The notes beneath the pieces were generated by a model. The model ran no database searches. It saw only the letters and a list, made by a program, of their open reading frames with translations, and had not been told where the DNA came from. This document shows positions 2,617 through 52,061 of a stretch of DNA of 64,000 bases, one piece after another. This DNA is from Paramoeba atlantica (taxonomy: Eukaryota > Protista > Discosea). The stretch covers positions 124,001 to 188,000 of the forward strand of contig CDRNVI010000065.1 in assembly GCA_977017575.1 (NCBI GenBank). The letters are read 5' to 3'. The position numbers were made by a program, and so were the translations under genes. Within the stretch, counting starts at the first letter, position 1. Every line of letters starts with the position of its first letter.

Positions 2617-4287
2617 CTAAGACCTTTTCAACAGCTTGGCGGGTCGCATTAAATTCGAAAAATCCTTTTTAAAGCACAACTCTAGCAACAGGGCCACACC
2701 ATACCCAGTGGCTCGATCGGAACGAAAAGCTGGAGCTGCAATATCTAGATGCACAAAGGGACCTTTGTATTGTTTATTCAAAGCCTTTTCTAAGAATCGA
2801 CCTGCAGCAGCCGATGATGCTGTAGCACGATCTTTAACGCTGTTTTTCAGATCTGCAACTTTGCTGTCAAACTGATCGTCCAGGAACTCTGGGCAGTACA
2901 AAAATGGGAAGCACAAATCTCCACTCTGTCTTCCAGCACGAAAAACATCTCGTTCTGTTGTGTCCAAATTTGTGTAGATTCCGCTATGTTTGACACCTGT
3001 AGCAAAACTCTGAGCACCCGTTAGCGTAGCCAGGTCGATGATCAAGGAAGGGTCAAGATGCGTTGTTGCGTAGGATATGGCGTCCGCAAGTACAATTCTT
3101 CCCTCCGCGTCGGTGTTATTTACCTCCACGCTGAGACCACAATGCAGTTTGATAATGTCATCGTTGCGATAGGAAAGAGGCCCCACGGCATTTTCTGCCA
3201 AAGAAAGTACAGAGTAGGCTCGCTGCGACGATTTGCTCAGTGCAGCTGCTAGAAACGCACAAAACGCAGCAGCCGCTCCACACATGTCGCATTTCATGTT
3301 GACCATATTTGCAGCAGGCTTAATTGCTAACCCACCTGCGTCGTATATGATGCCTTTGCCAACGAACACCACAGGCTTTTCAGATTCCTCCCCTCCTTGA
3401 TGTTCCAGAACCAGAAACCGTGGGGGCTCTGTGGCGGCCTTCCCTACGTTGTACAGCCCGGTGAGCTTCGCTGGGATTAAGTCCTCCCCCGCAATGTTTT
3501 GCCTCACGTGAAATCCATGCGTCCCGGAGAGGCCTTGTATGATTTCAGAGAATGTCGTAGTATCAAGTAAATTGGGGGGAGCATCACCTAGAATCATGCA
3601 TAATTGGCATGCATACGCGGCGTGATTCAGTGCAGCACAGTTCGGAGTGCTGTCCTCCGCTGACGTGGAGTTCCCAATATTAATAAGGCCTAGTAGCACG
3701 CGTGCTGGAGATTTCTTTTCTAGAAAAGCGTTCTCTTTACCTTTGACAGAAAATCGCGAGAAACTCTTCGCCACGGCACATACAAGACTGAGGTACGGCG
3801 TTGTTTGAGAGTCTTCGGACAAGTGAGGGACTATACAGGCACAAAGTACAACACAACTTTTTGGTGCACAAGAAACTTCAGAAGAAGTTCCATTCGTGCC
3901 GGAATCTCCTACATTCGATGACCTGAGGAGGGAAGTGACAATATCAGGACGTGAAGGACAATTATTTCTCGAGCTTTCATCCGAAATACAAAGGATTGTT
4001 ACACATATGAATGATTCATGGTTCTTTTTCAAGTAGAATTTTTGAGAAGATTTTACCTCGGTCTTGTGAACGATGTGCGTGTACAGATCCTTTTCCTCCT
4101 GTATAAATGCTGGCAAAGATGCAAAGAAAGATTCTTCGCATAAATTCTTTTTCGTTCCTATAAGAACATAGTTCGTAGAGCTATTAAACTCTTCATCAGT
4201 TGCAATAAGCTTTTTGCTGTGTACTTCTACGTTTCCTTTAAAGCCTATAACTTCGCGTACGAATTGGGAACGTTCCTCCGCAAACAT
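2617..4287 (-). CDS. NPEPL1: M17 leucyl aminopeptidase, NPEPL1-like
   Basis: GKGIIYDAGG, KCDMCG and NTDAEGR metal/catalytic motifs. The C-terminus DLATLTGAQ...YCPE...ADLKNSV...HLDIAAP...RATGYGVALL follows the NPEPL1 subfamily pattern. Confidence 0.85.
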   Translation of the reverse strand: MFAEERSQFVREVIGFKGNVEVHSKKLIATDEEFNSSTNYVLIGTKKNLCEESFFASLPAFIQEEKDLYTHIVHKTEVKSSQKFYLKKNHESFICVTILCISDESSRNNCPSRPDIVTSLLRSSNVGDSGTNGTSSEVSCAPKSCVVLCACIVPHLSEDSQTTPYLSLVCAVAKSFSRFSVKGKENAFLEKKSPARVLLGLINIGNSTSAEDSTPNCAALNHAAYACQLCMILGDAPPNLLDTTTFSEIIQGLSGTHGFHVRQNIAGEDLIPAKLTGLYNVGKAATEPPRFLVLEHQGGEESEKPVVFVGKGIIYDAGGLAIKPAANMVNMKCDMCGAAAAFCAFLAAALSKSSQRAYSVLSLAENAVGPLSYRNDDIIKLHCGLSVEVNNTDAEGRIVLADAISYATTHLDPSLIIDLATLTGAQSFATGVKHSGIYTNLDTTERDVFRAGRQSGDLCFPFLYCPEFLDDQFDSKVADLKNSVKDRATASSAAAGRFLEKALNKQYKGPFVHLDIAAPAFRSDRATGYGVALLLELCFKKDFSNLMRPAKLLKRS

Positions 4288-13272: not shown

Positions 13273-14196
13273 TCATACCATCATACCCATACTAATCAAC
13301 GGCGAGGCATAGTGCCCGGGACCGGGAGTACAAGACAGACGCTCGAAATGTGGCAATCTAGACGAGGTCGCGGAAAACGACGCCCGAGAACTGTTCGGAA
13401 TCCGATGCAAAGGATCCCGCGCGGATGTCGGCACTACCGCCCCCTTCGCATTAGCATTTTTTCGCGGAAGCACTGCCTCCCTCGGTTGCGTCGGTGGCCG
13501 GGTCCAGAAACTTCCCCTCCCCTTTTGCTGCACCTCCCCAACTCCGCCTTTCACACCATAATACCGTCCCGCCCCCTCCGTCTTCCCCAACGGAATCCGA
13601 GGCGCCCGGGAGCGCATACTCCCAGAAGCCTCCCTCCTCCTCACATCCCCCATCCCGGGAACCGCATAATGCACCCCAGGACCGTACTTCCCCAAACTGC
13701 CCCCCGCCCCACTCCCCAGCACACACCGCTCCGAGCCCGACCGCATCGAGGCACTGGGCAGTACCCGGTGATGCGCCCAACAAGAACCCGAAGCCGAAAA
13801 GGATCTCTCCCCCATCGTTTTATCCTTTGTAGCATAAAACGGTACCCCCTGGGTCGCGCTCCCGGGCTGTGGTCGGGCCGGGGCGCTGCTTCGGGACCGC
13901 CGACTCCCCCCGGCACTCTTCTTGCCCTCCCCCCTCCCGGGGAGCGTCACGGGGGGGTACGCTACTTGACCGACACTCTCGTTTACCTTTGCCGTATGCC
14001 TTTGACTGGAAGAAGCGTTGGAGGAGGGGAACCGGGGCGCTGTGAAGTTCATCGCGTACTTCCCTTTGTGGGGCTCATGCCGGGAGCGCGCGGTGCGGTA
14101 GGCGCGCATGCGCTGGAGGGTCTGGGCATGGAGGGAGGGGGGAGCGGGGGGGGAGGAGTAGGCGGATGCGGTGTCCTCGTGGGGGTCACGGGGCAT
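13273..14196 (-). CDS. GC-rich hypothetical protein with PGPGxY-like motifs (ODF3/SHIPPO-repeat-like)
   Basis: ATG on the cluster strand, preceded by a sense-strand pyrimidine tract (14210-14295). Motifs YGPGVHYAVP, GAGRYYGV and TPGPGHYASP. Confidence 0.5.
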   Translation of the reverse strand: MPRDPHEDTASAYSSPPAPPSLHAQTLQRMRAYRTARSRHEPHKGKYAMNFTAPRFPSSNASSSQRHTAKVNESVGQVAYPPVTLPGRGEGKKSAGGSRRSRSSAPARPQPGSATQGVPFYATKDKTMGERSFSASGSCWAHHRVLPSASMRSGSERCVLGSGAGGSLGKYGPGVHYAVPGMGDVRRREASGSMRSRAPRIPLGKTEGAGRYYGVKGGVGEVQQKGRGSFWTRPPTQPREAVLPRKNANAKGAVVPTSARDPLHRIPNSSRASFSATSSRLPHFERLSCTPGPGHYASPLISMGMMV

Positions 14197-14649
14197 GGGG
14201 GGGTGAGATAGAGGTAAAGAAAGGTAGAATAGGGTTCTTAGGTAAAGGTTAGGAGTTCAAAAAAGAGAAAAGAGAAAGGAAGAAAGGTGGGGGGGTGTGT
14301 GTCAATCGAAGTTGAGACCGTTTTGTTAATTTGTTTAGACGAGATCGGGATGGAGAAGATTCGGGACATTTTTTTAGATACACCCCTGTTTATTCTTGGG
14401 TAGACTTATTTGCGAATTCTGTTTCATTGAACTCACAATAGGTGCTATTCAGTACATGTCAACTAAAAGAACCTGATAAAAGAGTTTTTCCAATGTATCT
14501 AATCAACGTGTAAAAATACAATAAATTATGAACATCCAATAGATTTACAAATTTGCCGGATGGGTGCCTTTGCCAATAGTGAGTGCCTCTTTACGTCGCA
14601 AAAAAAAGGTCAGGAAGCTTCAAGAGCAGTGTTCTTGCCGTTAACTTGG

Positions 14650-17600
14650 CTACCAAACATTGTGCAAATTCCGTGTAAAGAGCTTACGATTATACTTTGA
14701 CATTCGACAAACTTCACAAAGTTCGCCTTCGAAACGCACCAAGGCAGGAGACACACAGTATTTGCACCAAACGACCGAATCCTTTTCTGAGCTTTTTATT
14801 TCACAATGAGACGCGGAGCACACAGTAAACATGTTCGTTGGATCATACTCTACCTGGTGAGCGTTGTCCAATTTTTGTGTGCTGATTAATTTACATGCTT
14901 GCTGCTCTACTGCAGGAGGAAGTGAGAACTCCAAAAGACGCGCTGCTACATTTGTCGCAAGACCAAAATTTCCAGCTTTGTAACATAGCACCATAGCACT
15001 TCGAAGAGCCAATATTAAGTGCTCTTGCTGCAGGTCAAAGTGAGTGAAATACAAAGCCAGCTTAAGCGAGGTTGGAATGTCTCCTGGGTGTGTAGCTAAG
15101 TGCTTTCGTCGATATAATTCCGTATTGAGTGCTTGGATGTATGAGACGGCTGGTAAGAATACCTTAGATTCGATTTCTTGAGCTTCCTCTGAGGATGGCA
15201 CTACAATTGTGGGATATGTACAAAGTACTTTATGAAAAGTTTGGGACGCATCCAAAAATTTCCCTTCTGTGGTTAATTTCATCGCTTCATTGAGTTGGAA
15301 ATCAATAAACTCGCGAGTGATGGGAAGGCGCTTGGTAAGATCATCAAAAGAAGCATTGCCCAATGGCCCTTCGACATCCCTCAATTTCCCCATGTACGGT
15401 AGAATGCAATCAAAGTGGCATATACCGCATTGCTCGAGTAATAAATGCATCGCCCGATCACCATCCCCGGTTAGCATGGCGTAGATGGGCATATCATCCC
15501 TGCCCTGATTTTTGTCGAATTCGTAGTCACTCATGGCATCCCATTGATCGAACTGGTCGGTTTGCTTCTCTTCCATATCTAATTCGAGATCCCAAGCTTC
15601 ACTAGCGGTGCGCGTGCTCGGAGAACGTAAACTCGAATGGTCCGTAAAATGCATTTCGTTGTCCAGAACACGCTCCTTTGTGCGGGTAGGATTCTTATAT
15701 GAATCAGAAAAAGTTTCACTTGTTGTCTTTTCTGGAAAGTCTTTGACCAAATCATGCTGATAAAATTCGTCAACATTTTCCGTTTCGTCTTCAAGGTGAG
15801 GCCACACTGCGATTTTGCGCAACTCAGCGAACTCTAGAGAAGAATCCTGCATGCTGAACAGCCCCGAGGGCTGCTTTTGGGTTTCTAGGTTTGCGCAACG
15901 TTGGATCAGATTATCCAGACACAATTGCGCCTCACATTCATTATCCGCACCTTTGTCGTTATCTCTGGAGTCGTAGATACATTGTACACGATTCTTGAAC
16001 TTCTCTTCAAGCTCTTGAATGATATCGCTACCCATGTGTCTCGTTCTCGCCAGAGCAAGCGCCAGAGCGTACTGCCCTGATTGCACCAATACATCTAACT
16101 GTTTCGTATGATTCCCCAGGATCATAGAGTAGGTAGTGGTAAGGTGGGGGCATGTGGATTTTTCCACGAGTGTTTCCAAACTCTCTAAATTGCCAAGTAG
16201 GAGATGCGTTTCAGCTTGAGAATTTTCATCGTTTGTACTTTCGTATGCCTCAAGAGCAGAAAGCGCGTCGCCATGTTCCCATGCAGCACGTGAAAAGTGC
16301 TGCCAAATATCCGAAGTATCCAATTCCTTCGCATACTTCCTGGCTTCGTTCAGCTTACCTTTTTCTAAAGAAAGAAAAAATTTACTCCGTGAATCTCTCA
16401 CAAAATATTCTGCCATGGGTCGAAGATTTTTCTTGCTGAGCAGATAGGCAGCGAGCGCTTGTCCGTGTACCTTCTTCCCACGAAGGATCTCATTTACGGC
16501 GGCGTGTTCGTGAAATGAAAGGGCTTGCTTTAAATGGAGTTCCGTGAGATCAATTTCCAAAGGACAAACCGAAGATGCGTCTGTAATAAAAAACGCTGTT
16601 TTTTCGAATACTGCAGCAAGATACAGCTTCTTCTTTGAGGAAATTTCACGAACCGTACCTACGTGACCGTTTGAAAGAACGAATTTAAGATGAGCAGTAG
16701 TTGCAAAAAAGATTGCGTTGGTTAAAGGTAGGGAAGATAATTGTGACGTTCGGTGCTTCTGGCGACTTACATTTCCAAAAACACAGCTTGTGATTTCTCG
16801 ATGAAGCTCCTTCACTTTAAAAAGAGTTCCAAGACGAGTACTGTCACACACGATCAACTCATTTTTAGCTACTAAGACTATAACGGACCGCAGCTGAACG
16901 GTGTTGTCTTCAGAGGTGTATGCATAATCATCTTGCGAATGCACGCCGACTAGATCTTTAACAGAATCTCTACAGGAAATTACAGAAGCTTTTCCATTGA
17001 GATCGACTTCTAATAAAAGAATATGTGTCGGTGTGCTTGCAAGGACGTTATTTTCGGACCCAGACAAGGTGTACAATGTATGAATCTCTGTTAATCCACC
17101 ATTTAGCACCGTAGAAGCGGGATCAATTTCACCATGAAAAGATTCGCCCCTTTTAATCTCGGTCAATGGCATGCTGCTTACTGTTTCGTTTTGAAGATTC
17201 TTGATCAATAGATTCGATTGATCCAATGCGATAATACGCCCGCTTCCGCAAAACGCTGTGCTCGAATAATAACCCTTGCGCATCTCTACTGCTGCCCGTT
17301 GAGTGGGTGTTTTTGATCCAATCGTATAAAGTTCATATCGCGGGCTTGTTTCATCAAATATACAAAGTGCTGCTTCAACATTCTCTACGTAGTACAAATG
17401 ATTTGGGATTCCTTTTCGGCGTAACGAACAAATGATGCTTTCCTTTCTAGTGTCGAAATTATAAGTGTAGAGTGTTCCTTCCCGTACGTAATACAGACCA
17501 GCTACATGCCCAGGTTCTGCGTTAAAATGTACGCCTCGTGAATATGCCGGGTGCTCGGATCGTAGTCTCGTGACGCCAAACCCGTGATCATACCCAAAAG

Positions 17601-18648
17601 CTATGAGACCGTTTTCATTCACTGCTAGGGACCAGATACGGCCTACCTGACCGGCATGCAATCCACCAGGTCGGCTGATAGTCTTGATTGCGTTGCCATT
17701 TTCGGTATTCCACATCCGTATTGTTCCGTCCTCCGATGCACTTAGAATATTCGAGGTTTCGACGTCTAGTAGTACACAGGTTACATTTCCTGTGTGACCC
17801 CTCAGCTGCTCTAGCTCATATCCAGGGAAAGGTGCTGTTTCATTGTACATCATTGTCGTCGAACACGCCTCATCAATACTCCACACTCGAATCGTTTTGT
17901 CATCCGAGCCACTGACCAACAGAGGACGGGTGGGATGAAACGCAACGCTATTCACGGCTCGCTCATGCCCCTCCAGAATACATCTCACAAATATTTCGTT
18001 CGCAAACAAATCCGGTGCAAGCAACGGAAGAGCTGCGGGCAAGGAACGAGAATCGGAACCGTAGGAATCCGTACCATCTGACAACACCCCGGCACTTCTC
18101 GCGAGCTCGGACAAACTTGGCGCTGGCTTCCGTGTACGCACGCCGGTAATATCCCAAATCCGGATGGTTTGATCCAACGACCCGGAAGCCACTAAATCGG
18201 GGCTTTGCCCACTCGGGTGAAACACCCCACACATGACGTAGTGGTTGTGCCCGGCGAGTACCCCGAGGCAGGTGCGGGACTGCCAGTTCCACAGCCGTAG
18301 CACCTGGTCGTCACTCCCGGAGAGCAACCAGGGCTGCTCGGTGTGAAAGGAGACGCAGCGGACGTAGTCCAAGTGGCCGACCAGGGTGGCTGTGATCCGT
18401 CGCTGAGCGTAACTCCACAGACGAACTTTGGTGTCATCCCCCCCGGAGGCGAAGAGGGGCTGGTGGGGGTGGAAGCACACCGCGCGGACGGCGCCCTGGT
18501 GCTCATTTGCGTATCGTTCTTGGAGGGTTTGGTTCTGGTAGTCCCAAATCTCGAGTTTTCCGTCGTGCAGCCCGACAAGGATCCAGGGACGTTCGGCGTG
18601 AAAGCTCAGGGCTTTGACACGAGCGGAGTGTAAGGAGAATTCGCTCAT
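14650..18648 (-). CDS. COPA: coatomer subunit alpha (COPI)
   Basis: SARVKALSFH...WD40 repeats GHLDYVR / GHNHYVMC, and a C-terminal Cys-rich end (CKYCVSP...CEVC). The likely ATG is 18648; the track extends to 18720. Confidence 0.92.
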   Translation of the reverse strand: MSEFSLHSARVKALSFHAERPWILVGLHDGKLEIWDYQNQTLQERYANEHQGAVRAVCFHPHQPLFASGGDDTKVRLWSYAQRRITATLVGHLDYVRCVSFHTEQPWLLSGSDDQVLRLWNWQSRTCLGVLAGHNHYVMCGVFHPSGQSPDLVASGSLDQTIRIWDITGVRTRKPAPSLSELARSAGVLSDGTDSYGSDSRSLPAALPLLAPDLFANEIFVRCILEGHERAVNSVAFHPTRPLLVSGSDDKTIRVWSIDEACSTTMMYNETAPFPGYELEQLRGHTGNVTCVLLDVETSNILSASEDGTIRMWNTENGNAIKTISRPGGLHAGQVGRIWSLAVNENGLIAFGYDHGFGVTRLRSEHPAYSRGVHFNAEPGHVAGLYYVREGTLYTYNFDTRKESIICSLRRKGIPNHLYYVENVEAALCIFDETSPRYELYTIGSKTPTQRAAVEMRKGYYSSTAFCGSGRIIALDQSNLLIKNLQNETVSSMPLTEIKRGESFHGEIDPASTVLNGGLTEIHTLYTLSGSENNVLASTPTHILLLEVDLNGKASVISCRDSVKDLVGVHSQDDYAYTSEDNTVQLRSVIVLVAKNELIVCDSTRLGTLFKVKELHREITSCVFGNVSRQKHRTSQLSSLPLTNAIFFATTAHLKFVLSNGHVGTVREISSKKKLYLAAVFEKTAFFITDASSVCPLEIDLTELHLKQALSFHEHAAVNEILRGKKVHGQALAAYLLSKKNLRPMAEYFVRDSRSKFFLSLEKGKLNEARKYAKELDTSDIWQHFSRAAWEHGDALSALEAYESTNDENSQAETHLLLGNLESLETLVEKSTCPHLTTTYSMILGNHTKQLDVLVQSGQYALALALARTRHMGSDIIQELEEKFKNRVQCIYDSRDNDKGADNECEAQLCLDNLIQRCANLETQKQPSGLFSMQDSSLEFAELRKIAVWPHLEDETENVDEFYQHDLVKDFPEKTTSETFSDSYKNPTRTKERVLDNEMHFTDHSSLRSPSTRTASEAWDLELDMEEKQTDQFDQWDAMSDYEFDKNQGRDDMPIYAMLTGDGDRAMHLLLEQCGICHFDCILPYMGKLRDVEGPLGNASFDDLTKRLPITREFIDFQLNEAMKLTTEGKFLDASQTFHKVLCTYPTIVVPSSEEAQEIESKVFLPAVSYIQALNTELYRRKHLATHPGDIPTSLKLALYFTHFDLQQEHLILALRSAMVLCYKAGNFGLATNVAARLLEFSLPPAVEQQACKLISTQKLDNAHQVEYDPTNMFTVCSASHCEIKSSEKDSVVWCKYCVSPALVRFEGELCEVCRMSKYNRKLFTRNLHNVW

Positions 18649-18819
18649 AAAATAAGTAGATACTACCCAGTAGATAATATGTTTTTGATGAGAAATGAGT
18701 GTGGTAAAAAGGTGTGACAAGTTAAAGTTTTTTAAGGAATTATCTTTTATCTAAAACCAAATTTACCACTTTGTTACCATTATCTAACCGCACTACAGTG
18801 TTCGTCGTCACTACCACAT

Positions 18820-18889
18820 CATTCGGTTCAAAATCCATTATGCGCCACCTAAAGGTTTAGGCACACAACTTCACAAGAAGAACCCAATG
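18820..18889 (-). promoter_or_regulatory. SECIS element (type II, GUGA variant)
   Basis: Sense RNA: CAUUGGGUUC UUCUUG UGAA GUUGUGUGCC U AAA CCU UU AGG U GGCGCAUAAU GGAU UUU GAACCGAAUG. It shows helix I, a UGAN/NGAN quartet, a 10-bp helix II, unpaired AAA and an apical mini-helix, 32 nt after the TAG. Confidence 0.9.
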
Positions 18890-18921
18890 GAGCGAAGGAG
18901 TGACGGCTCACATTCCCTTCC

Positions 18922-20544
18922 CTACCCTCAGCATCCCGGGACCTTTGGGGTAGGAAAATCTCGCTTTCGCACAAGGCTGCCTATACACTCCGCCATGGTA
19001 GGATGAATGCCCATCGTTTGCCGCAGTGTTCGTAGCGTCAACCCGGCGTGCATGGCAACAGCTATGCCTTGCGTAATCTCCCCCGCATGGGGACACGTAA
19101 GGTGCCAACCAATGACGGTTTCATTCGTATCCCTCCCTCGGGCGTTGTCTGCATCCAAAGGAGCATCGAGATCTCGCCGTGTGATGACTTTGAGAAAGCA
19201 CAAGTCACGTGGGAGGCCGGGTAGCGTCCACTCAAGGGGGCAAAAGGCAGTGTGATAGACTTCGATTTGTTTTTCAGGATAGAGCGCACACGCTTGTTCC
19301 TCACTCGGGCCAATGCGACCGTACTCCAAAGGTGTGAATACGGTTGTGGGCATGGCTTGAGCAAAAAAGTGTACCGTCTCCCGGGCTCGTTCTGAAAACA
19401 GATTGTTCGCCAGTGTTCGACCCGAGCGTATGGCGACTGGGGTAAGTTCCGCACCTCCACGAACGACATCTCCAATGGCGTACACCTGAGGGTGTGAGGT
19501 CTTCGCAAATTCATCGGTAATAATATGATGTGTGCTCGGATCGATTTTCACGCCCAACGTGTCGAAACCCAACCCCGTAGTTTGGGGGCGGCGTCCCATC
19601 GCAAACAGAACCGTATCACAGTCCATAACACCGCCCTTCATAGTATGCAATCGAAGCTTTGGAGAATTTGATGCAACATTCGATTCCACACGTACTAATT
19701 CCTTTGGTTGGTCGTACACGAAATCGACTGAGTCCGCCATGGACTGTACGACCCTGGCCACAGCGTCCTTGTCAAAACCACGCAGCGGGGTAGAGCGAAC
19801 CAACACGGAGGGCCGGTTCAACGGCCTTTCCCCTTCATGAGATGCGTACTTCGCGAAGCTCCCTAGAAATCCAGCACACTCCAGTGCAATGTATCCTGCC
19901 CCCACCACCACGACCTTTTCTGGGTCTTTGTTCAACCAAAACAAATCATCGGAGGTGATGCCAAAACGTTGGGCCCTCGGAATCGAGGGATACTGCGGCC
20001 GTCCCCCTGTCGCCACCACCACGTGACGAGCATGCATGGTCGTAGAGCTCTCGGAGCTATCGGGGTCCGTACACCTCACCGCCACACAAGCCCCGTGGCC
20101 GTGTTCCCCCGTAACCCACGCTCTGGCATTCACATAATCCACGTTTAACTCCTGACACGCCACTCGGGTACTAAAATTCAGCGAGCGTATGTAATTGGTG
20201 ACATTCTCTCGAAGTGTGCTCCACTGCATTCGATATCTCGGAACACTATCCTTTTCGGAATTACACAAACCCCAGCCAAAATACGGTGCCATGTGCGAAA
20301 GGATCTCACCCTGCTGCGCGGCAACATGAAACAATTTCTTCGGGATGCAGCCAACGTTGACACAGGTGCCGCCGAGACCCCAGGAGGTGCCGTAGGGACT
20401 CGGGGGGACGTAGTCGACCAGCGCCACTGAGGCGCCGAGTTTGGCCGCCTGGGTCGCACAGGCCACCCCCCCACTACCGCCACCGATGACCAGCAGGTCG
20501 TAGACACTCTTGGGAAGGTGAAACACACCGGAGCGTAATAACAT
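18922..20544 (-). CDS. TXNRD: high-Mr thioredoxin reductase, selenoprotein (C-terminal Gly-Cys-Sec-Gly)
   Basis: GGGSGG FAD site, GGTCVNVGCIPKK redox centre, HPTxAE motif. The 3' end reads GGA TGC TGA GGG TAG, with TGA at 18930-18928 and the true stop TAG at 18924-18922. Confidence 0.92.
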
Positions 20545-20928
20545 GGGATTGTTAGTTCATGGAAGAATGGTACTGTGCTCTTTGAGCAGAGTACGATGGA
20601 GAGAATAGGATAATAATCTAAGCAAAATAAGAAGTGTTTCGGGAAACGTATGTTTGGTGGAGAAGACACAAAAAAGAGATCAAGTAGGGGAGAGTCAAAA
20701 TGTAGTTTTTGTGACATGTGTAAAAAACAGAAAGAGCTCGACTATACTCGTCTTCAGGAATAAAAAAAGTGTGTTATCTTTCGCCCATATAACCGAAGAA
20801 AAGGAATACCGTATGCCTTAAGATAAAAAAACGGGAAATTTCGATGCGTGTTTGGGTGACTGCTTAAAGGAAGAAGCAAAAGAAGCCGCATCATAAAGCT
20901 AAAACAGCTTGCTAATACCTAATTGCAG

Positions 20929-22320
20929 TTAGGATGAACGCATAAAAGGATTAACAAAGACGTACTTTTCCGGAACACATTCTTCTGCTTCGCCGAGACC
21001 AGGAATTTTACTTTCCACGCGAAATCGCAGAATATTATTGTTCGGGCAAAATTTGTGAATCTTCCATTTCTTTGCGTCTGTTAGCTCCTTGCGCTGCAGT
21101 TTCTGCAATACGTTAGACACAAGTGCGAGCTCAGCAACTCGAGCCTTTTTCCGGTCATTGAGCACAGGTTGCAAAACGGATAGAAGCTTTTCATGCAACT
21201 CGGAGTGCAGTTGCTTCCAAAGTGAATCCTCCCGCATAAGCGTATCCAAATTACGATTCGTGGCACTGTAAAAGGACTCCCTCTCCTTTTCGGTTAGACT
21301 TACTTCCGAGGGCATTTCCTGCACGTAGCTTGTAATCTTTTTCGCCACCTCACTTCGCTTTCTCCAAACCCGTTGGACAATCGCCTCCGCCCCGGTCTCC
21401 GCACTCTCTAAATCATTTTCCATAATCAGTGTTTTCAACGATCCGCACTGGGTGACATTTTTCATCACAATACGGTTCCCGTTCCCCCACTGCTCACGAT
21501 GGCCTCGCATTGCCTCTGTACTCCACAACACGACATTAATTTCATTCGCTGAGATTTCTTCCTCCTCCTCTTCCGTCTTTTTCCCAAAACCAGCGACCAC
21601 CGTATTTGGATTCATTTGAAACGAGAAACTCATAGGGGGCGTACTCGAGGGGGGGGCTTCTTTTTTTACCGCTTGGTCCTCTCTTTTTTTAGCGACCAGA
21701 AGGAACACATTCAACGGCCTGCCGCCGTGTTTCACCCTGCGCCACACCAACCCCCCCGAGGGAAGGGACCGGTAGTGGTCCGGGGTGTAGTCCTCCTCGT
21801 GGAGATGCGCCACCGTGGCTTTCGTGACGAAATGGGTCGGGGCGACGTGAAGGGTGTCTCCCAGGGCGGTGGACGGGGGCTCGAGCAGCACAAGGTACGG
21901 CACTTTCGCCACCTCCTCCCCTCGGGGCTCCAGCGCCATATCCCCCATGCGTCGTACCAGGTAGCAGAACCGGGGGGACCCGGGACGGTAGTCGGTCCGT
22001 AGGCGCTGCCGTATGAGGTCCCAGTTAAAAGGTTGTTTCCCGGAGGCGCCGGGGGTTGTAAAGCTGTCGGGTTCTTGTTTGAAAATATCGTCCAGATCAA
22101 TCATGGAGGAGATATCCTCTGGGCTACCATCAAAAAGCTCAGCCGAGGCGGGCCACGGGACAGACACTTCCTTCGCCTTCTTTGATGGGGTGTCCGTTTC
22201 GTTTTTTCTTCGTCGTTTCGCACGAAGGACATCGTCTAAAGTGGCTGTAATTTCGACAGAGTCTCCTCGGAGGCCTGTGCGCCGTGAATGGGGTGATTCG
22301 CCTTCGCTGGATTGACTCAT
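20929..22320 (-). CDS. hypothetical protein
   Basis: Long ORF on the cluster strand with an acidic/basic low-complexity N-terminus. The likely ATG is 22320 (MSQSSEG); family not recognised. Confidence 0.6.
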   Translation of the reverse strand: MSQSSEGESPHSRRTGLRGDSVEITATLDDVLRAKRRRKNETDTPSKKAKEVSVPWPASAELFDGSPEDISSMIDLDDIFKQEPDSFTTPGASGKQPFNWDLIRQRLRTDYRPGSPRFCYLVRRMGDMALEPRGEEVAKVPYLVLLEPPSTALGDTLHVAPTHFVTKATVAHLHEEDYTPDHYRSLPSGGLVWRRVKHGGRPLNVFLLVAKKREDQAVKKEAPPSSTPPMSFSFQMNPNTVVAGFGKKTEEEEEEISANEINVVLWSTEAMRGHREQWGNGNRIVMKNVTQCGSLKTLIMENDLESAETGAEAIVQRVWRKRSEVAKKITSYVQEMPSEVSLTEKERESFYSATNRNLDTLMREDSLWKQLHSELHEKLLSVLQPVLNDRKKARVAELALVSNVLQKLQRKELTDAKKWKIHKFCPNNNILRFRVESKIPGLGEAEECVPEKYVFVNPFMRSS

Positions 22321-22685
22321 GAATAAGTGAGAATAAAAAGAGATACGAGCTAACGCAGAATAATTAAAACAATATGTTGATGACCAATCATAATGCGTGG
22401 TTTCTTTTCTTCTGCTTACGAACAGATGTCCATTTGCAGAAACAGAACAGATCAGGTAATCTAAGTCAACTATAAAGATGCCGTACGTATATGCAGCACG
22501 TTCATACAGTGTTCGCAACCAGAAGATGAAGTGTTTTTTGTAGACAAATTTTAACTATACAGTAATTCTAGTAATTAAAAGAAAAACATTGATCTCGGAA
22601 TCGCGCCTTCATACACAAGCGATAGAATTTACAAGCGTAAGAATTTCCATTACGTTCGTCCGAGTTTCCATATTTTCTGTTTGCG

Positions 22686-26581: not shown

Positions 26582-27159
26582 CAGTGTTCGCAAAAATTTG
26601 TGAACTTTTTGTTGTGCAACTTTTGAAATTGTTGCACAATAAAAAATTCACCAATTTTTGTTGCACAAATATTAGTGTAGAATTTTTTTTGTTGAGGAAA
26701 ATGTAGGCGGTATGGATAAATCCAATCCAATACAAATCATTCCGGGTTGCTCCGGACGGTCGCTGGTAAGCCACACTATTCACAGATAGATTTGGAATAG
26801 TAATGGAAGGCAATTCGGTGTGAATAGTAATGTAATGTGTGTGTATATTCGGACGCGTGGTAAGTATTAATAAAATATTTGCGTTTGAAAAGAAAGTTAA
26901 ACACAAATAAAAAAGGATTTAGGCACAATCATTCAGAACTGCTAAAGAAAACCAAGGGGAACTGCTAAAAACCATGGGGGGGTATGCTATTGGCCCTGGG
27001 TCACGATACCATGCCCCCGAGCTCACAGGTATTCTAAAGCGGACCCTCTTTTAGGTTAAAAAAAGTTTTGATTTTAGAATTTGGGCAAAAAAATTAAAAT
27101 GAAATTTCCATTTTTAAAAATGTTGCACAATAAAAAATTCACAAATTTTTGTTTTCCTG
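26582..27159. mobile_element. second MITE-like insert within the hAT-like element
   Basis: Imperfect ~38-bp inverted ends (CAG..CAAAAATTTGTGAAyTTTTTrTTGTGCAAC). TA is present on the left side only. Confidence 0.45.
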
Positions 27160-40706: not shown

Positions 40707-41262
40707 AAAGTGGTCAGCTGGCCACTGTTTCTCAAAGTGGTCAGCTGGCCACCTCCTGAAAGAGTGACCACCTGGCCACCCTAAGAAACAGTGGCCACCT
40801 GACCACCCTCTGAAAAACTGGCCAGCTCGCCACCCTCTGAAAAACTTGCCACCTGTCCGCCCCTTGAAAAGGTGGCCAGGTGGCCACCCTCCGAAAAAGT
40901 GGCCACCTGGCCACCCTCCGAAAAAGTGGCCACCTGGCCACACTCTGAAAAAGTGGCCACCTGGCCACCCTCTGAAAAACTGGCCAGCTGGCCACCCCTT
41001 GAAAAAGTGGCCAGCTGGCCACCCCCTGAAAAAGTGGCCACCTGACCACACCTTGAAAAAGTGGCCAGCTGGCCACACCTTGAAAAAGTGGCCAGCTGAC
41101 CACACCTTGAAAAAGTGGCCAGCTGACCACACCTTGAAAAAGTGGCCAGCTGGCCACCACCTGAAAAAGTGACCAGCTGGCCACCCCTTGAAAAAGTGGC
41201 AGTCTGACCACCTCTTGAAAAAGTGGCCAGCTGGCCACCACCTGAAAAAGTGGCCAGCTGTC
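40707..41262. repeat. 27-bp minisatellite, about 20-21 units, with a palindromic core
   Basis: Consensus AAAAAGTGGCCAGCTGGCCACMCYYTG; the core GTGGCCAGCTGGCCAC is a perfect 16-bp palindrome. Confidence 0.95.
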
Positions 41263-47219: not shown

Positions 47220-50200
47220 ATGGCACTTCCCCCCTCCACCTCTGCCCCCCAAGCGCAAGGCGACCTCCCTCGAGGATCTGCTGGCGCAAAATCATCGCGT
47301 AAGCACAGCTTCCACTTCACTCAGCAGCGCGCAATACCGATTAAAATCAGACACTCGACTTCCTCGCTTTGGATATACTTCTCCGATATTCACGCGGCGG
47401 CCTCCTTCCTTACTGAAAAGAAACACTTTAATACAGAAATCACAGCGGAGCTTTCCTTGGCACGCACTTTGGATACTGGAGCGAAGAGAACCGATGGTAT
47501 TCTAATCGAGAAATGTACTTTACAAGAAGTGATGGACGAAGAAGCTTGTGAACACTTTGTGTTCAAAGAAACTGCGCCGCCCCACCGCATTTTTCGACAC
47601 GCCAGCTGGACCGCGGCGCACGCAGACGAAGTCCTGAATCTCAGCCAACAATACTCTTGCCCTGGCACACTCGGTAGGGCGATTAAGAAGAAACTGGCTG
47701 GTCACGATATCCCAGGATTGGCATCCTTCGACATAACCCACGTATCGCAGAGGGAACAGACGTCCGACGAAATCCCTTGGGAAAATCCCAAGATCTCGTA
47801 TGATGAGCCACTCGCAATTCGCGCGCCGAGGCAACCGAATGATTCTCGAGGAACACGGTCGTTACGTACGCAGCCGTGCGCGCACCGATGCCTAAACAAA
47901 CTAACATGTCTCCATCCATGCTGTAAAGTGGGCATTGAATCCGAACCCATTCCCGACCCTGCCTCCGATCCGAACGCGCGCCAGCTCGGTGAAGCAGGTT
48001 CCATGGTTGACGCTTCGCCACATTCAACAGCGTGCAGACGACCTGAGTCCACGCGTTCGCAGCCGTGCGCACACCGATGCCTAAGCAAACGAATATGTCT
48101 ACATCCGTGCTGTAAAGTGGGCATTGAACCCGAGCCTATTACCGACCCTGCCTCCGATCTGAATGCTCGTCAGCTCGTTGAAGCGGCTCCTACTGCTCTA
48201 GTAGCAGTGCAGCAAACAGCCTCCAGACCTGGGTATACGCTTTCACAGCCCTGCGCGTATCGTTGTCTAAACAAACTAACATGCCTTCACCCATGTTGCA
48301 AAATAGGCGGTGAATGTGATCCGGCCTCTCAAGCAGGCACGCACCGACCCACGGGAACGATTCAGAGTCCCCACACCGACTCGACACAACTACGAGATGA
48401 GCCACACCAGACTATGTACAGCACAACAAGGCGGCCATGCAAGCATGTCTGTCGGGACAAACAGAATTGCAAACATGGATGTTGCAAAGTTGGCGTGCTG
48501 GTCGATAGTTCTACACCCACCGACCCCAGTAGACCTGGAATTCCACATAATGAAACCTATGTTGCCTCCACTCGTAATCTGCACGCGCAGCACATACAGC
48601 CAACATCTGCAAGGAAAATTTCTGACACATCTACGGTACCGGAGGGGGAAGAATCCTCGCACAAACCCTACAAACACCTGTGCCACAACAAGGAAGAATG
48701 TAAGCACAAGTGTTGTAAGGAAGGTGTCCAAAGCCCAGTTAAAGATCCCCGATCGGGCTCGAGTCGCTGGAGCCTGCGCAATCTTCTTTCATGGGGCTTC
48801 ACCACAGGGAGCACGCGTACCAACGAAAACACAGCCCCTGCACGCACAAGGGATGGCCATGCAACCGGATCCGCAGCGCAACGTTACCCCGAGACGCACA
48901 GGAACATGCCACAGGACCAACAGCAAGCCGAAACGACCGCACATCACACACAGGCCCGAATAGATGTGATTGAAGAAACCGAGACACAGGTGCAGGGTAC
49001 AACACAGCAGGATTTACCACATCATGACACGCAACCAAATAGTATACCGAATGTACGCACGATTCTGCAATCACAACGGATGAGAACGTGCAACGATCGT
49101 TCAGGAAGCCCAGAAACTGCGGAAGACTTGCTGAGTACCTTGCGTACGATTGAAGGAGGGCGAGTAATGGCTAGTCTTTCTCATGAGCAATGGCAACGCG
49201 CAATCAAGAAGTCGTTCGAACGATGTGAGAAATACCTTAAACCAGCTGCAACCCCAACTGAAGCACTGCGACATGCCGATTTGTTAACTGCCTGCATAGC
49301 AGTCTCGGCTTATGAAATCGCGCGGGAGGCTGACCCAACGAAAGGATTCAAGCTGCGTTCGACGACTGGCCACACCAAACGTGCTTCACGACCTCTCAGC
49401 TACGATCGCTCAGCAAAGGAACTTTCTGGACATATCCGCCAATTAAAACGTACCCTCTCTTACACACACGGCCGCTCGGAAAGAGATCGCCTGATACGCA
49501 ACATAAAAGAAGCCACGAAAGCCCGCAACCTCTACACAGAAGAAGCAAATCTCCTGCGACGTGAAAGGGAGAAAAGATGGGTGACGGACAGATTTCAACG
49601 GAACCCCTGGACCGCAGGAGGGGAATGCCTCGACAATAACGAGAAGATGCGAAAACAGCCAACGATTTTCCCGAATTGTCCACAGGCAGTTATTGAAACG
49701 TTCTTCAAGGACACACTAAGCATTGGCAACGAAACCCACACTCTACCCCCCACTGATCTTCTTGGCGCTGGAAACGAAAGCGAAATGAAGTGGGAAGATA
49801 TTGACGTGCAAACCATAGCCGCGGCTATCTCCTCCAAGCGACCGTCCGCTGCACCAGGTCCTGACACCATAAGTAACGCCTTCCTCCGACGCTGCACTGA
49901 GCTGTACCCCTTCATCGCCCAAGTATTCAACGACCTACTCAAACACTCCGTAGGTCCAACCCACTGGAAACAAGCGGTGACTCGACTCATCCACAAAGGG
50001 GGGGCTACGGATAAACTGTCGAACTGGCGCCCTATCAGCCTGACCAGCTGTCTGGGGAAGCTACTCCACTCAATCATAGGACACAAACTTCTGAGTCACG
50101 CTGTCAGCACAGGGATCATCGACACGACCATACAAAAAAGCTTTCTCCCCAATGTCAATGGAACCATCGAACACACGCAAGCGCTTTGTGAACTGCTGGA

Positions 50201-52061
50201 TTTTCAGAGGCAGCACAAACGGCAATACTGCTTGGGTCAATTCGACCTGAAAAACGCCTTTGGTTCTCTTCCACACTCGATCCTCTTCCAAGTATTACAA
50301 TGGGCAAAGGTGTCGCCGATTATCATCGAATATGTTCACTCCCTCTATACCAGTGCTTCTCTCCGAGTCAAGTGTGCTGAGGGGTTGACTAACCACATTC
50401 CCGTTGAACGAGGCGTTCTTCAAGGCGACACCCTATCTCCTGTGCTATTCAACCTTGCGATGGAGGTAGTTTTAAGGTACCTTCGATCCAGCTTTCCAGG
50501 ATATGGCATCACATGGGGCGGGCAAGAATCATTCCTTAAGGCGTTTGCGGACGACCTTGCCGTCATTACCAAATCACCCGAAGAAATGCAGCATGTTACT
50601 AACGCCCTGGTAAAGGTGCTCGCCAGATTAGGCATGCGGCTAAATGTACAGAAATGTCGGCTTCAGTATATGGCTGTAGCGGATGGAGGATACAAAACCC
50701 ACAGACCGCGCATCCGTGCCGGCGGCGAAAGCATACCCCACGTTTGCGACAAAGGCAGCCAGTTTCTGGGCATGACGCTAGCGCCTGGAGCCCAACAAGG
50801 GAAAGTGTTGTTCAAGAGTCTCCGTACACAACTACGCCACTGGCTTACCAACGTATCTGAAAGTGCCATGGATACGCCCGCCCGCCTCTGGGTCTACAAT
50901 AACGTCATTATTTCCCGTCTACGCTACGTTCTGACGGTAAATCCTGGAATCACACTGAATTTCATCCTGCGGCTGCAAAAGCTTGCGACTACACACATTC
51001 GGAAATGGGTGAATATGGCCAAAACTGCAACCAGCGAACTTCTCTATTCTGAGCGGGGGTGGGCCTTAACTAGTTTCTCAAAGCTGTGGATACTCTGCAC
51101 GAGTACACTGGTCGAGCAAATGCAGAAATCTCGTGACCCGGCTGTGCAACAGGCTTTAAGACACCGCATCCGCAGGGAACTGCACAAGCGCTCAACGGGA
51201 CACGTCCAACCAGTAGTTGAACTGTACGACCGACGAGAAGACCGTGTGGCGACACGGCGGTTCATTGAGAGTGAATACGAGCGACACCTTTCCGAATCCG
51301 TGCAACGACGGGCTCCCATAGCGGCACAGTGGTTCCGTATGGCCACTGAGGACGAACTTGCGAAAGACTTTGCTGCTGCGGTATGTAACATCAACAGTGA
51401 GGCACTCTCCCGGTTTACTGCATCTGTGTTGACCCAAACACCACTACCTACTCGTTCAGCACTGCGTCGTTGGGGTCTAAGTACGCACACGGACACAAAG
51501 TGTCCCATTTGCAATGAGGAGGTGCAGACAGTTCGACATGTCCTCACAGGGTGCAAGGTGGCCCTTGAACAGGGCCGCTACACGTTCCGCCATGATCTTA
51601 TACTCCACGCTATCGCAGATGCCGTAAGAGCATCCCCAGAAACAGCGCAGTACCACTTTGATCTTTCTCTTTACCGAAACCCCCGAACATGGCCAAGTCA
51701 ACAGGACACGGCCCTTAGACCTGATGGGTGGATCAAGCTACATAATGGTACTGAGTTCATACTTGAGCTCACTTCTCCGTGGGAGGAAAACTTTTTATCC
51801 TCACATGAGCGGAAAGTGCGGAAGTACGGGAATCTGTTTCTCGAAAGGAAAATGACTAACCCGGCAACCTTTCTTCTTGTCATCGAAGTGGGGGCCAGAG
51901 GGAAGCTCAACTCCTCTACGCGAGCGCTCAACTCACTTTTCGGAGGTAGCAAGGCCACCGCCTCGCAATGTCGACAGAAGCTTGTCAAAAGAGCAATACG
52001 AGGAAGTTTCGCGATTTTTCAAAACCGCGATAACCCGAGCTGGACGGAAGCCAGCATATAG
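47220..52061 (+). mobile_element. non-LTR retrotransposon, single ORF with RT plus CCHC and REL endonuclease (HERO/NeSL-like)
   Basis: RT motifs NWRPISL, DLKNAFGSLPH, GVLQGDTLSP and AFADD. C-terminal CPIC...HVLTGC, GRYTFRHD, RPD, ELTSPWEE, HERK..KY and EVGARG. Uninterrupted 1613 aa; A-rich 3' end near 52160-52172. Confidence 0.92.

Follow-up and report, generated by a model that had tools for sequence, protein, structure and literature searches.

The DNA stretch analyzed here, in the following called the window, comprises 64,000 nucleotides of the Paramoeba atlantica assembly GCA_977017575.1 (contig CDRNVI010000065.1, positions 124,001 to 188,000 of the forward strand); all positions below refer to the window unless a relative is named. 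On its minus strand, between 18922 and 20544, it contains a gene for a thioredoxin reductase (TrxR). The sequence makes it very probable that the gene is functional and encodes a large, animal-type TrxR that is a selenoprotein, in which a UGA codon is decoded as selenocysteine (Sec) by means of a Sec insertion sequence (SECIS) element in the 3' region. The host of the gene appears to be a kinetoplastid.

The TrxR gene and its UGA-Gly-stop tail

The called open reading frame (ORF) of the gene covers 18931-20544 (minus strand) and encodes 538 amino acids with VPGC as the last residues; a TGA is located at 18928-18930. The reverse complement of 18500-18990 contains this 3' end as GTC CCG GGA TGC TGA GGG TAG. 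When the in-frame UGA at 18928-18930 is read as Sec, it becomes the penultimate codon of a Gly-Cys-Sec-Gly tail. This tail is completed by a Gly codon, GGG (18927-18925), and followed by a true stop codon, TAG (18924-18922); the two codons together occupy 18922-18927. The predicted full coding sequence (18922-20544, minus strand) then comprises the 538 called codons plus Sec (TGA), Gly (GGG) and TAG, and the recoded product has 540 residues. An earlier, sequence-only reading of the window had already noticed that the ORF track stops at VPGC and that the DNA continues with TGA GGG TAG, and this is what the sequence contains. The codons GGA TGC TGA GGG TAG at 18936-18922 match the GGN TGY TGA GGN stop pattern of the large Sec-TrxRs.

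For comparison the DNA of relatives was fetched, namely that of the loci L001, L002, L003 and L004 (Perkinsela sp. CCAP 1560/4) and of the distant loci L006-L008. The TrxRs of the closest relatives are 55% (L001), 51% (L002) and 44% (L003) identical to that of the window. The order Cys-TGA-GGN-TAA/TAG is kept in all eight loci that were read, i.e. in the window and its seven relatives. Since the 3' regions are otherwise unalignable across the loci, this conservation implies that the two-codon extension after the Cys is under selection.

The 19 long ORFs of the window end with TAA (7), TAG (6) or TGA (6), and the TrxR gene is the only one in which a TGA is followed by a Gly codon and a stop codon. 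A genome-wide reassignment of UGA was rejected, because five other long ORFs of the window end at a UGA as an ordinary stop. No long ORF interrupted by an in-frame UGA was found in the window. A related alternative is that the UGA of the TrxR gene is read through as Cys, or as Trp via a near-cognate or reassigned tRNA. Both have precedents: PMC12153298 describes a reassignment of UGA to Trp in one trypanosomatid lineage, and work cited in PMC3628699 is on mammalian TrxR, which can take Cys at the UGA under selenium deficiency. The two observations on the other long ORFs and the presence of a dedicated SECIS element render such a readthrough without Sec extremely improbable.

Judged from its sequence, the protein has the class-I pyridine nucleotide-disulfide oxidoreductase fold with domains for flavin adenine dinucleotide (FAD), nicotinamide adenine dinucleotide phosphate (NADPH) and dimerisation; its Pfam matches are Pyr_redox_2 (1.1e-50), Pyr_redox (4.1e-11) and Pyr_redox_dim (6.4e-19). 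Among solved structures it scored 381 bits with TrxR2, 372 with thioredoxin/glutathione reductase (TGR), 356 with TrxR1, 208 with glutathione reductase (GR) and 186 with trypanothione reductase (TryR). The sequence-only reading had recognized the animal type of TrxR in the GCUG redox tail. In the NCBIfam ranking the model TIGR01438 (TGR/large TrxR) is first with 448.7 bits. The invariant columns in an alignment of nine sequences include the GGGSGG motif for FAD, the CVNVGC motif (C61/C66), the His514/Glu519 dyad and Cys538. On this sequence evidence the protein is classified as a large (high relative molecular mass, high-Mr), animal-type TrxR with all catalytic residues.

Two other identities were discarded. 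A TryR is out with 197.8 bits against TIGR01423, for which the cut-off is 738.1, with the above score of 186 bits against solved TryR and with a Cys-Sec tail present. A GR is out with 208 bits compared with 381 for TrxR2.

About 107 of the 120 listed homologs are predicted to end with ...GC. This is the signature of Sec-TrxRs that gene callers have miscalled at the UGA. Several homolog entries from JGI carry the name 'thioredoxin/glutathione reductase (selenoprotein)'.

The SECIS element and the proposed recoding of UGA

The SECIS element extends over 18820-18889 on the minus strand and was recovered with Rfam, by folding and with an explicit grammar. It has form 2, with helix I, an internal loop of the kink-turn (K-turn) type, a helix II of 10 bp, an unpaired UAA and an ACC/GGU mini-stem. 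Folding of 18815-18895 with RNAfold gives helix I as CAUU.GGUUC / GAACC.AAUG, an internal loop (5' UGUGAA, 3' UGGAU), the 10 bp of helix II as GUUGUGUGCC / GGCGCAUAAU, and an apex in which the UAA is unpaired and the ACC/GGU stem carries the 4-nt loop UUUA. Helix I starts at 18889, which is 32 nt past the TAG. The sequence-only reading had described a SECIS at this distance, with helix I, a 10-bp helix II and an unpaired stretch of A, and the fold reproduces all of them. The CCU-UU-AGG apical stem that it had proposed has to be replaced by the ACC/GGU stem with its UUUA, since a loop of 2 nt is sterically impossible.

On its 5' side the SECIS core reads GUGA (18871-18874), with a G in the place of the consensus A. 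The sequence-only reading had pointed to this G in front of the quartet, which is a known variant (PMC3473315). GUGAA is also present in L002, L003, L004 and L008. The 3' side of the core, UGGAU (18833-18837), was located in the Rfam alignment, and UGGA is common to the window, L002, L003 and L004. GUGA at 18874-18871 and GGA at 18836-18834 are flanked by helix I and helix II, which is the arrangement of a K-turn core. In the structural model the GA of UGGAU is paired with the GA of GUGA as tandem sheared pairs; the G that precedes the 3' GA would face the core U as U.G and not as the usual U.U. In both the fold and the Rfam alignment the conserved unpaired adenosines are supplied by a U-AAA stretch at 18856-18859, 12 nt past the core UGA; the spacing of U-AAA from the core is 11-12 nt in the window, L002 and L003.

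The SECIS has a minimum free energy of -28.8 kcal/mol (z = -4.31), and none of 200 shuffled sequences was as stable. The Rfam model SECIS_1 (RF00031) matches 18825-18884 on the minus strand over the full model length with 34.8 bits (E 4.5e-5 in a local stretch of 801 bases). In the whole window, both strands included (128 kb), this is the single SECIS_1 hit (E 0.0036). It lies on the strand that carries the TrxR gene, 37 nt downstream of the TAG and 43 nt downstream of the TGA. The explicit SECIS grammar asks for an A/G-UGA core, a closed helix II, an unpaired AA 10-14 nt past the core, a 3' GA and a helix I. It found nine candidates in the 128 kb, among which the TrxR site is the best by 6.6 kcal/mol; none of the other eight follows a gene that has an in-frame TGA at its end. 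The same grammar had no match in 300 dinucleotide shuffles of the 3' region from the window. The SECIS of the window is not a product of chance.

Hairpins with a GUGA core are also found in L002, L003 and Perkinsela (L004), 70-100 nt past the UGA. Their anatomy is U/A-GUGA-A, a helix II of 9-11 bp, an unpaired AA(A) 11-12 nt past the core and a 3' side that reads UGGA. The shuffle controls of the grammar gave 0/300 matches for L002, 0/300 for L003 and 4/300 for Perkinsela. The base pairs of helix II differ among the four core-anchored sequences; the fifth pair, for example, is U-A, G-C, C-G or A-U. This indicates that the structure is kept and not the sequence. The comparison refers to the helices of each sequence, anchored on the core. 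With apical parts of different length, MAFFT brings only the 5' halves into register, and a covariance model for SECIS elements of the GUGA type was therefore dropped.

In 18 kb from the relatives Rfam had no SECIS hit at E<=1. When short stretches were searched, only L002 gave a match, with 16.6 bits (E 1.1); the SECIS elements of L003 and Perkinsela were missed, and L001 had no hit either. The misses in L003 and Perkinsela and the weak score of L002 show that the GUGA flavour of SECIS is poorly captured by the standard model. In L008, a distant metagenomic Sec-TrxR, the best SECIS candidate (L008:3628-3684) is located 615 nt past the UGA and has a GUGAA core and a total energy of -33.7 kcal/mol.

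The alternative to recoding is that the UGA is a genuine stop; the gene would then encode a Cys-only enzyme ending in ...PGC, and the hairpin would be a chance or unrelated structure. Several observations weigh for this alternative, or generally against a Sec-TrxR. The Rfam score of 34.8 bits is 0.2 bits short of the curated gathering score of 35. The 448.7 bits with TIGR01438 are below the curated cut-off of 475.85, which is a curation threshold and not a biochemical criterion; so low a score is in keeping with the divergent clade in the TrxR tree. In the syntenic ortholog L001 neither Rfam nor the grammar recognized a SECIS within 1.8 kb (the contig has 2.08x coverage). There are only about 273 nt from the TAG to the next ATG (18648). 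Finally, the sequencing runs that cover the locus behave as DNA, and for the proposed recoding the poly(A) site would have to lie beyond the SECIS.

Some of these points can be specified. L001 keeps TGC TGA GGA TAA (region L001:4585-6400). Directly after the TrxR its gene order departs from that of the window, with a gene other than coatomer alpha downstream; the 3' junction of L001 may be misassembled or rearranged. In the window the 3' region of the TrxR gene is limited by the gene for coatomer alpha (14650-18648, minus strand), with its ATG at 18648-18646. A pyrimidine-rich stretch with a downstream AG occurs near 18712-18662; together with the end of the SECIS at 18820 this leaves about 100 nt for a poly(A) site. 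The TrxR locus was not found in the single run that was guessed to be RNA, and one DNA-like run that covers the locus shows GATC junctions. The allelic differences in the DNA-like runs amount to 13 in 2.5 kb with none in the UGA or the hairpin, which is not significant alone.

A genuine stop is contradicted by the Gly codon and the stop codon after the UGA, which are kept in all eight loci, by the sole SECIS hit in 128 kb, which is rightly placed, and by the recurrence of the SECIS in relatives. Furthermore, it is established biochemistry that a large TrxR that is cut before the Sec cannot reduce thioredoxin. We consider a genuine stop highly improbable.

According to the recoding model the ribosome would reach the UGA at 18930-18928, and the SECIS at 18889-18820 would direct the insertion of Sec in place of termination. 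The SECIS would do so by recruiting a SECIS-binding protein of the SBP2 type, eEFSec and the Sec-tRNA. After the Sec one Gly would be added, and translation would end at the TAG, with a tail of ...Pro-Gly-Cys-Sec-Gly. That Sec is inserted and that the SECIS is still part of the mature mRNA is what we infer. In the enzyme the electrons would be passed from NADPH to FAD, from there to the Cys61/Cys66 disulfide (CVNVGC) and on to the selenenylsulfide that Cys538 and Sec539 form in the partner subunit, which reduces thioredoxin; this is the established mechanism of large TrxRs. The window contains no tRNA genes, and the genes for eEFSec, SBP2, PSTK, SepSecS and SPS2 are not among its contents either. 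Trypanosomatids have a working Sec system, and their selenoproteome comprises SelK, SelT and SelTryp (Lobanov et al. 2006, PMC1557815).

Host lineage, N-terminus and neighbouring elements

A phylogenetic analysis of the TrxRs, which the sequence-only reading had proposed, places the gene with prokinetoplastid TrxRs and outside all animal TrxRs. The window is on one side of a split with a support of 100, together with L001, L002, L003 and transcripts of the free-living prokinetoplastids PhM-4 (Papus) and PhF-6 (Apiculatamorpha; both names from PMC7859406). On the other side a second kinetoplastid paralog (Perkinsela and PhM4_b) stands with all remaining TrxRs. The proteins of the window and Perkinsela are 44% identical and represent different paralogs. 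These sequences indicate that the TrxR of the window belongs to a divergent kinetoplastid clade with a PGCUG tail, which is distinct from the second paralog of Perkinsela and Papus. An exhaustive representative search found no further members of the PGCUG clade.

The M17 aminopeptidase of the window (2617-4287) has its best matches in three ENA contigs and a transcript of Paramoeba aestuarina (45-47% identity); the next matches are from Trypanosoma (38%), Bodo and Neobodo. In the M17 tree the kinetoplastids form one clade with a support of 99 in the Shimodaira-Hasegawa-like approximate likelihood ratio test (SH-aLRT). Inside this clade one group (100) unites the window, the ENA contigs and the Paramoeba-derived sequence; Neobodo, Bodo and all trypanosomatids stand on the opposite side (97). 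The kinetoplastid Perkinsela lives inside Paramoeba, and we take the Paramoeba-derived M17 sequence to be Perkinsela-like. From 2.6 to 43 kb the long ORFs of the window are lined up on one strand in a single array, after which the strand switches, and they show no sign of introns; such an array fits kinetoplastid polycistrons. A faint match to the zinc finger of the kinetoplastid editosome protein MP81 is carried by L003.

The M17 and TrxR trees together imply that the host of the gene is an early-branching kinetoplastid, which by these sequences belongs to the Prokinetoplastina side and not to the trypanosomatids. The sequence-only reading had stated that this genome, if kinetoplastid, retains a Sec-dependent TrxR, and the two trees supply the kinetoplastid host. 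Its contrast with trypanosomatids, which lack TrxR, does not apply, because the host is on the Prokinetoplastina side and TrxR of non-trypanosomatids has already been published (PMC7052976).

If the contig came from a non-kinetoplastid eukaryote, e.g. prey, a host or a contaminant, it would still carry a Sec-TrxR, and this would have no bearing on kinetoplastids. A protein search with WDR3/UTP12 leaves room for such an origin, in that it was swamped by WD40 repeats and gave no taxonomic signal; the atlas look-alikes of the two upstream genes were equally uninformative on taxonomy. Against it stand the position of the M17 from the same contig inside the kinetoplastid clade (99) with the Paramoeba-derived sequence (100), the grouping of the TrxR with transcripts of Prokinetoplastina, the intron-free-looking same-strand array with its strand switch and the faint MP81 match in the relative L003. 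A non-kinetoplastid origin of the contig is considered very improbable.

The protein begins with a basic, acid-free extension of 14 residues, MLLRSGVFHLPKSV (20500-20544, minus strand), which in the alignment precedes the GGGSGG motif for FAD and may be a short mitochondrial presequence. Similar extensions occur in P0002 (MLRR), P0003 (MFRS) and P0005 (MFRR) and are absent in P0004 and P0006; a start with M-[LF]-[LR]-[RS] is present in four of the six members of the PGCUG clade. L003 is without an extension, with the start fixed by an in-frame stop two codons upstream, and PhF6_a likewise has none. The second paralog of Papus (PhM4_b) has an acidic N-terminus. Basic starts of the M-[LF]-[LR]-[RS] type resemble short mitochondrial presequences of kinetoplastids.

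On the basis of these sequences we slightly favor a mitochondrial TrxR. The same Sec-TrxR could instead be cytosolic or dually localised, with an MLLRS extension that is no targeting signal; we give this a somewhat lower probability. It is in line with an extension of just 14 residues and with the two clade members, L003 and PhF6_a, that have none. It is less easily reconciled with the basic, acid-free N-termini in four of the six clade members, which match the pattern of short kinetoplastid presequences, and with the acidic N-terminus of PhM4_b, which suggests two compartments for two paralogs. The top match among solved structures is furthermore the mitochondrial TrxR2, by a small margin. 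The mitochondrial targeting that the sequence-only reading had derived from the MLLRS start gains from the recurrence of this type of start and loses from its absence in L003 and PhF6_a, and is suggestive only.

Right after the TAG the transcript can form a GC-rich hairpin (18894-18920, minus strand), the main stem of which begins 7 nt past the UGA. This hairpin is a candidate for a proximal stimulator of recoding that resembles a selenocysteine codon redefinition element (SRE). It coexists with the SECIS in a single 122-nt fold. A GC-rich hairpin is located behind the real stop codon in all five kinetoplastid TrxR loci. In four of the five, namely the window, L001 (4594-4624), L003 (4574-4594) and L004 (4058-4086), the main stem starts at nt 10-11 if the U of the UGA is taken as nt 1. 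A first stem of at least 5 bp at nt 10-11 is found in 2 of 37 control stop-codon contexts and in 5-9% of shuffles. Three points weaken the hairpin. Its energy gives z = -0.15 in the window and -0.71, -1.63 and -1.59 in other loci, and only L001 is significant (-5.05). The three non-kinetoplastid Sec-TrxR loci are without such a hairpin. The criterion on the stem position was picked post hoc. An SRE-like element is a weak lead.

What we infer on the localisation of the enzyme and on the role of the hairpin enters into a wider proposal. According to this proposal the gene represents a divergent Sec-TrxR paralog of the prokinetoplastid side with a PGCUG tail, a K(R/K)D linker, shared insertions, often an MLRR-type N-terminus and a probably mitochondrial location. 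Its UGA would be recoded by two cooperating signals, the GUGA/UGGA SECIS and the SRE-like hairpin 6-7 nt past the UGA. As a whole this combination is rather unlikely. If true, the hairpin would be the first proximal element proposed for any TrxR.

The gene order GCP, unknown gene, TrxR is common to the window and L001. The unknown gene (window 20929-22518, minus strand, 529 amino acids; L001:1164-2549) is 49% identical between the two over 462 residues (E 1e-154). It has no Pfam family and no look-alike in the atlas; by sequence it appears to be a conserved, lineage-restricted protein. At 18001-22000 the GC content is 0.55 in the TrxR gene (0.58 at third codon positions, GC3) and 0.51 in the unknown gene upstream (GC3 0.55), compared with 0.41-0.47 in the flanking genes.

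Several other features of the window deserve mention. An ORF of 307 amino acids at 13273-14196 (minus strand) has a GC content of 0.64 (GC3 0.69) in contrast to 0.41-0.47 in its neighbours, and it is mirrored by an ORF of 299 amino acids at 13312-14211 (plus strand). The 307-residue ORF of this GC-rich island has no Pfam match, and the GC skew of the 12-14 kb bin is strongly negative. The GC content is also raised, in a way similar to that of the TrxR region, at 34-36 kb, 40-42 kb and 46-52 kb. At 26592-26659 a segment of 68 nt matches one microRNA-precursor model on both strands with about 34 bits (threshold 101); the match on both strands means that the segment is a near-perfect palindrome. 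Three adjoining weak matches to hairpin-type Rfam models are located at 40707-41148 (minus strand), two of them to the same model with 79 nt each (40989-41067 and 41070-41148). Such an arrangement points to repeats of about 80 nt that can form hairpins and stand in tandem between genes, where the GC content is higher. The only long ORF on the plus strand, at 47220-52061, encodes 1613 amino acids; the AT skew is strong (0.25 at 48-50 kb), and the GC content is higher there.

Comparison with known TrxRs and recoding elements

Butenko et al. 2020 (PMC7052976) reported that among kinetoplastids TrxR is missing only from the trypanosomatids; their paper uses neither the word 'selenocysteine' nor 'selenoprotein'. 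The TrxRs of that study and the Perkinsela protein P0071 belong to the same enzyme family and to the same part of the kinetoplastid tree as the TrxR of the window. The public entry for Perkinsela sp. CCAP 1560/4 (P0071, 'thioredoxin reductase'; L004:4049-4180, GCA_001235845.1, LFNC01000462.1) has 516 amino acids and ends with ...GNC, after which the DNA continues with TGA GGA TAG. A SECIS-like hairpin with a GUGA core, undetected by Rfam, follows about 75 nt downstream. Perkinsela hence resembles the window in both the Cys-TGA-Gly-stop order and the GUGA-core SECIS, and its sequence suggests that two codons are probably missing from the public gene model. It provides an example for the warning in the sequence-only reading that standard annotation truncates such genes.

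The gene model of the window should gain two codons, Sec and Gly, and the same correction applies to Perkinsela; without it the enzyme is predicted to be inactive. Early-branching kinetoplastid lineages keep a thioredoxin system beside trypanothione, whereas TrxR has been lost in trypanosomatids. The TrxR that early kinetoplastids retain, and that trypanosomatids later lost, would be the selenium-dependent form. If the early kinetoplastid TrxR was Sec-dependent, the shift to trypanothione only also cost a selenoprotein and left SelK, SelT and SelTryp. All this corrects an annotation in a lineage from which TrxR has been reported before, and the current understanding is not overturned. The additions are modest and concern the Sec nature of kinetoplastid TrxRs, the PGCUG clade, a lineage-typical GUGA/UGGA core and a possible proximal hairpin.

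The SECIS of the window can be compared with the GUGA_AA elements of Chlamydomonas, Ostreococcus and the sponge Amphimedon, which likewise have a G for the A before the UGA and keep the unpaired AA (PMC3473315). In the two algae most SECIS elements have a GUGA_AA core, and in the sponge 12 of 21; the variant is functional and typical of lineages, not of gene families (PMC3473315). The window represents another eukaryotic lineage, and UGGA is on the 3' side in all four kinetoplastid elements. With GUGA cores in four kinetoplastid loci, which represent two paralogs, kinetoplastids would join the lineages with this type of SECIS. Protist TrxR genes may use GUGA cores more widely than the AUGA consensus implies. 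The finding matters for automated surveys of protist selenoproteomes, in which such elements are under-scored by standard models.

For the hairpin behind the UGA the known counterparts are the SRE of SEPN1, which starts 6 nt past the UGA, and stem-loop 1 (SL1) of SelS, which boosts Sec insertion only when it is near the UGA (PMC3628699). As in the window, these stem-loops stand about 6 nt past a Sec UGA, and in SelS, as in TrxR, the Sec is penultimate, so that SL1 is at the very start of the 3' untranslated region (UTR; PMC3628699). Unlike these elements, the candidate of the window is based on positional recurrence only.

TryR, which takes over the role of a disulfide reductase in trypanosomatids, shares the superfamily and the fold with the TrxR of the window but has no C-terminal Cys-Sec extension. 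The closest likeness is to the mammalian enzymes TXNRD2 and TXNRD1 (1zdl, 3dgz, 2zz0, 3ean), with which the predicted protein has in common the fold, the domain order, the CVNVGC motif, the His/Glu dyad, the GCUG tail and a SECIS in the 3' UTR. The scores with the mammalian TrxR structures are 356-381 bits at 42-45% identity. The window differs from the mammalian TrxRs in that a Pro precedes the GCUG, the TKRSG linker is replaced by K(R/K)D and two lineage-specific insertions are present. Its SECIS core is GUGA and not AUGA, and its gene is intron-free and part of a polycistronic array. In the tree it occupies a long branch outside all TrxRs from animals, choanoflagellates and other protists.

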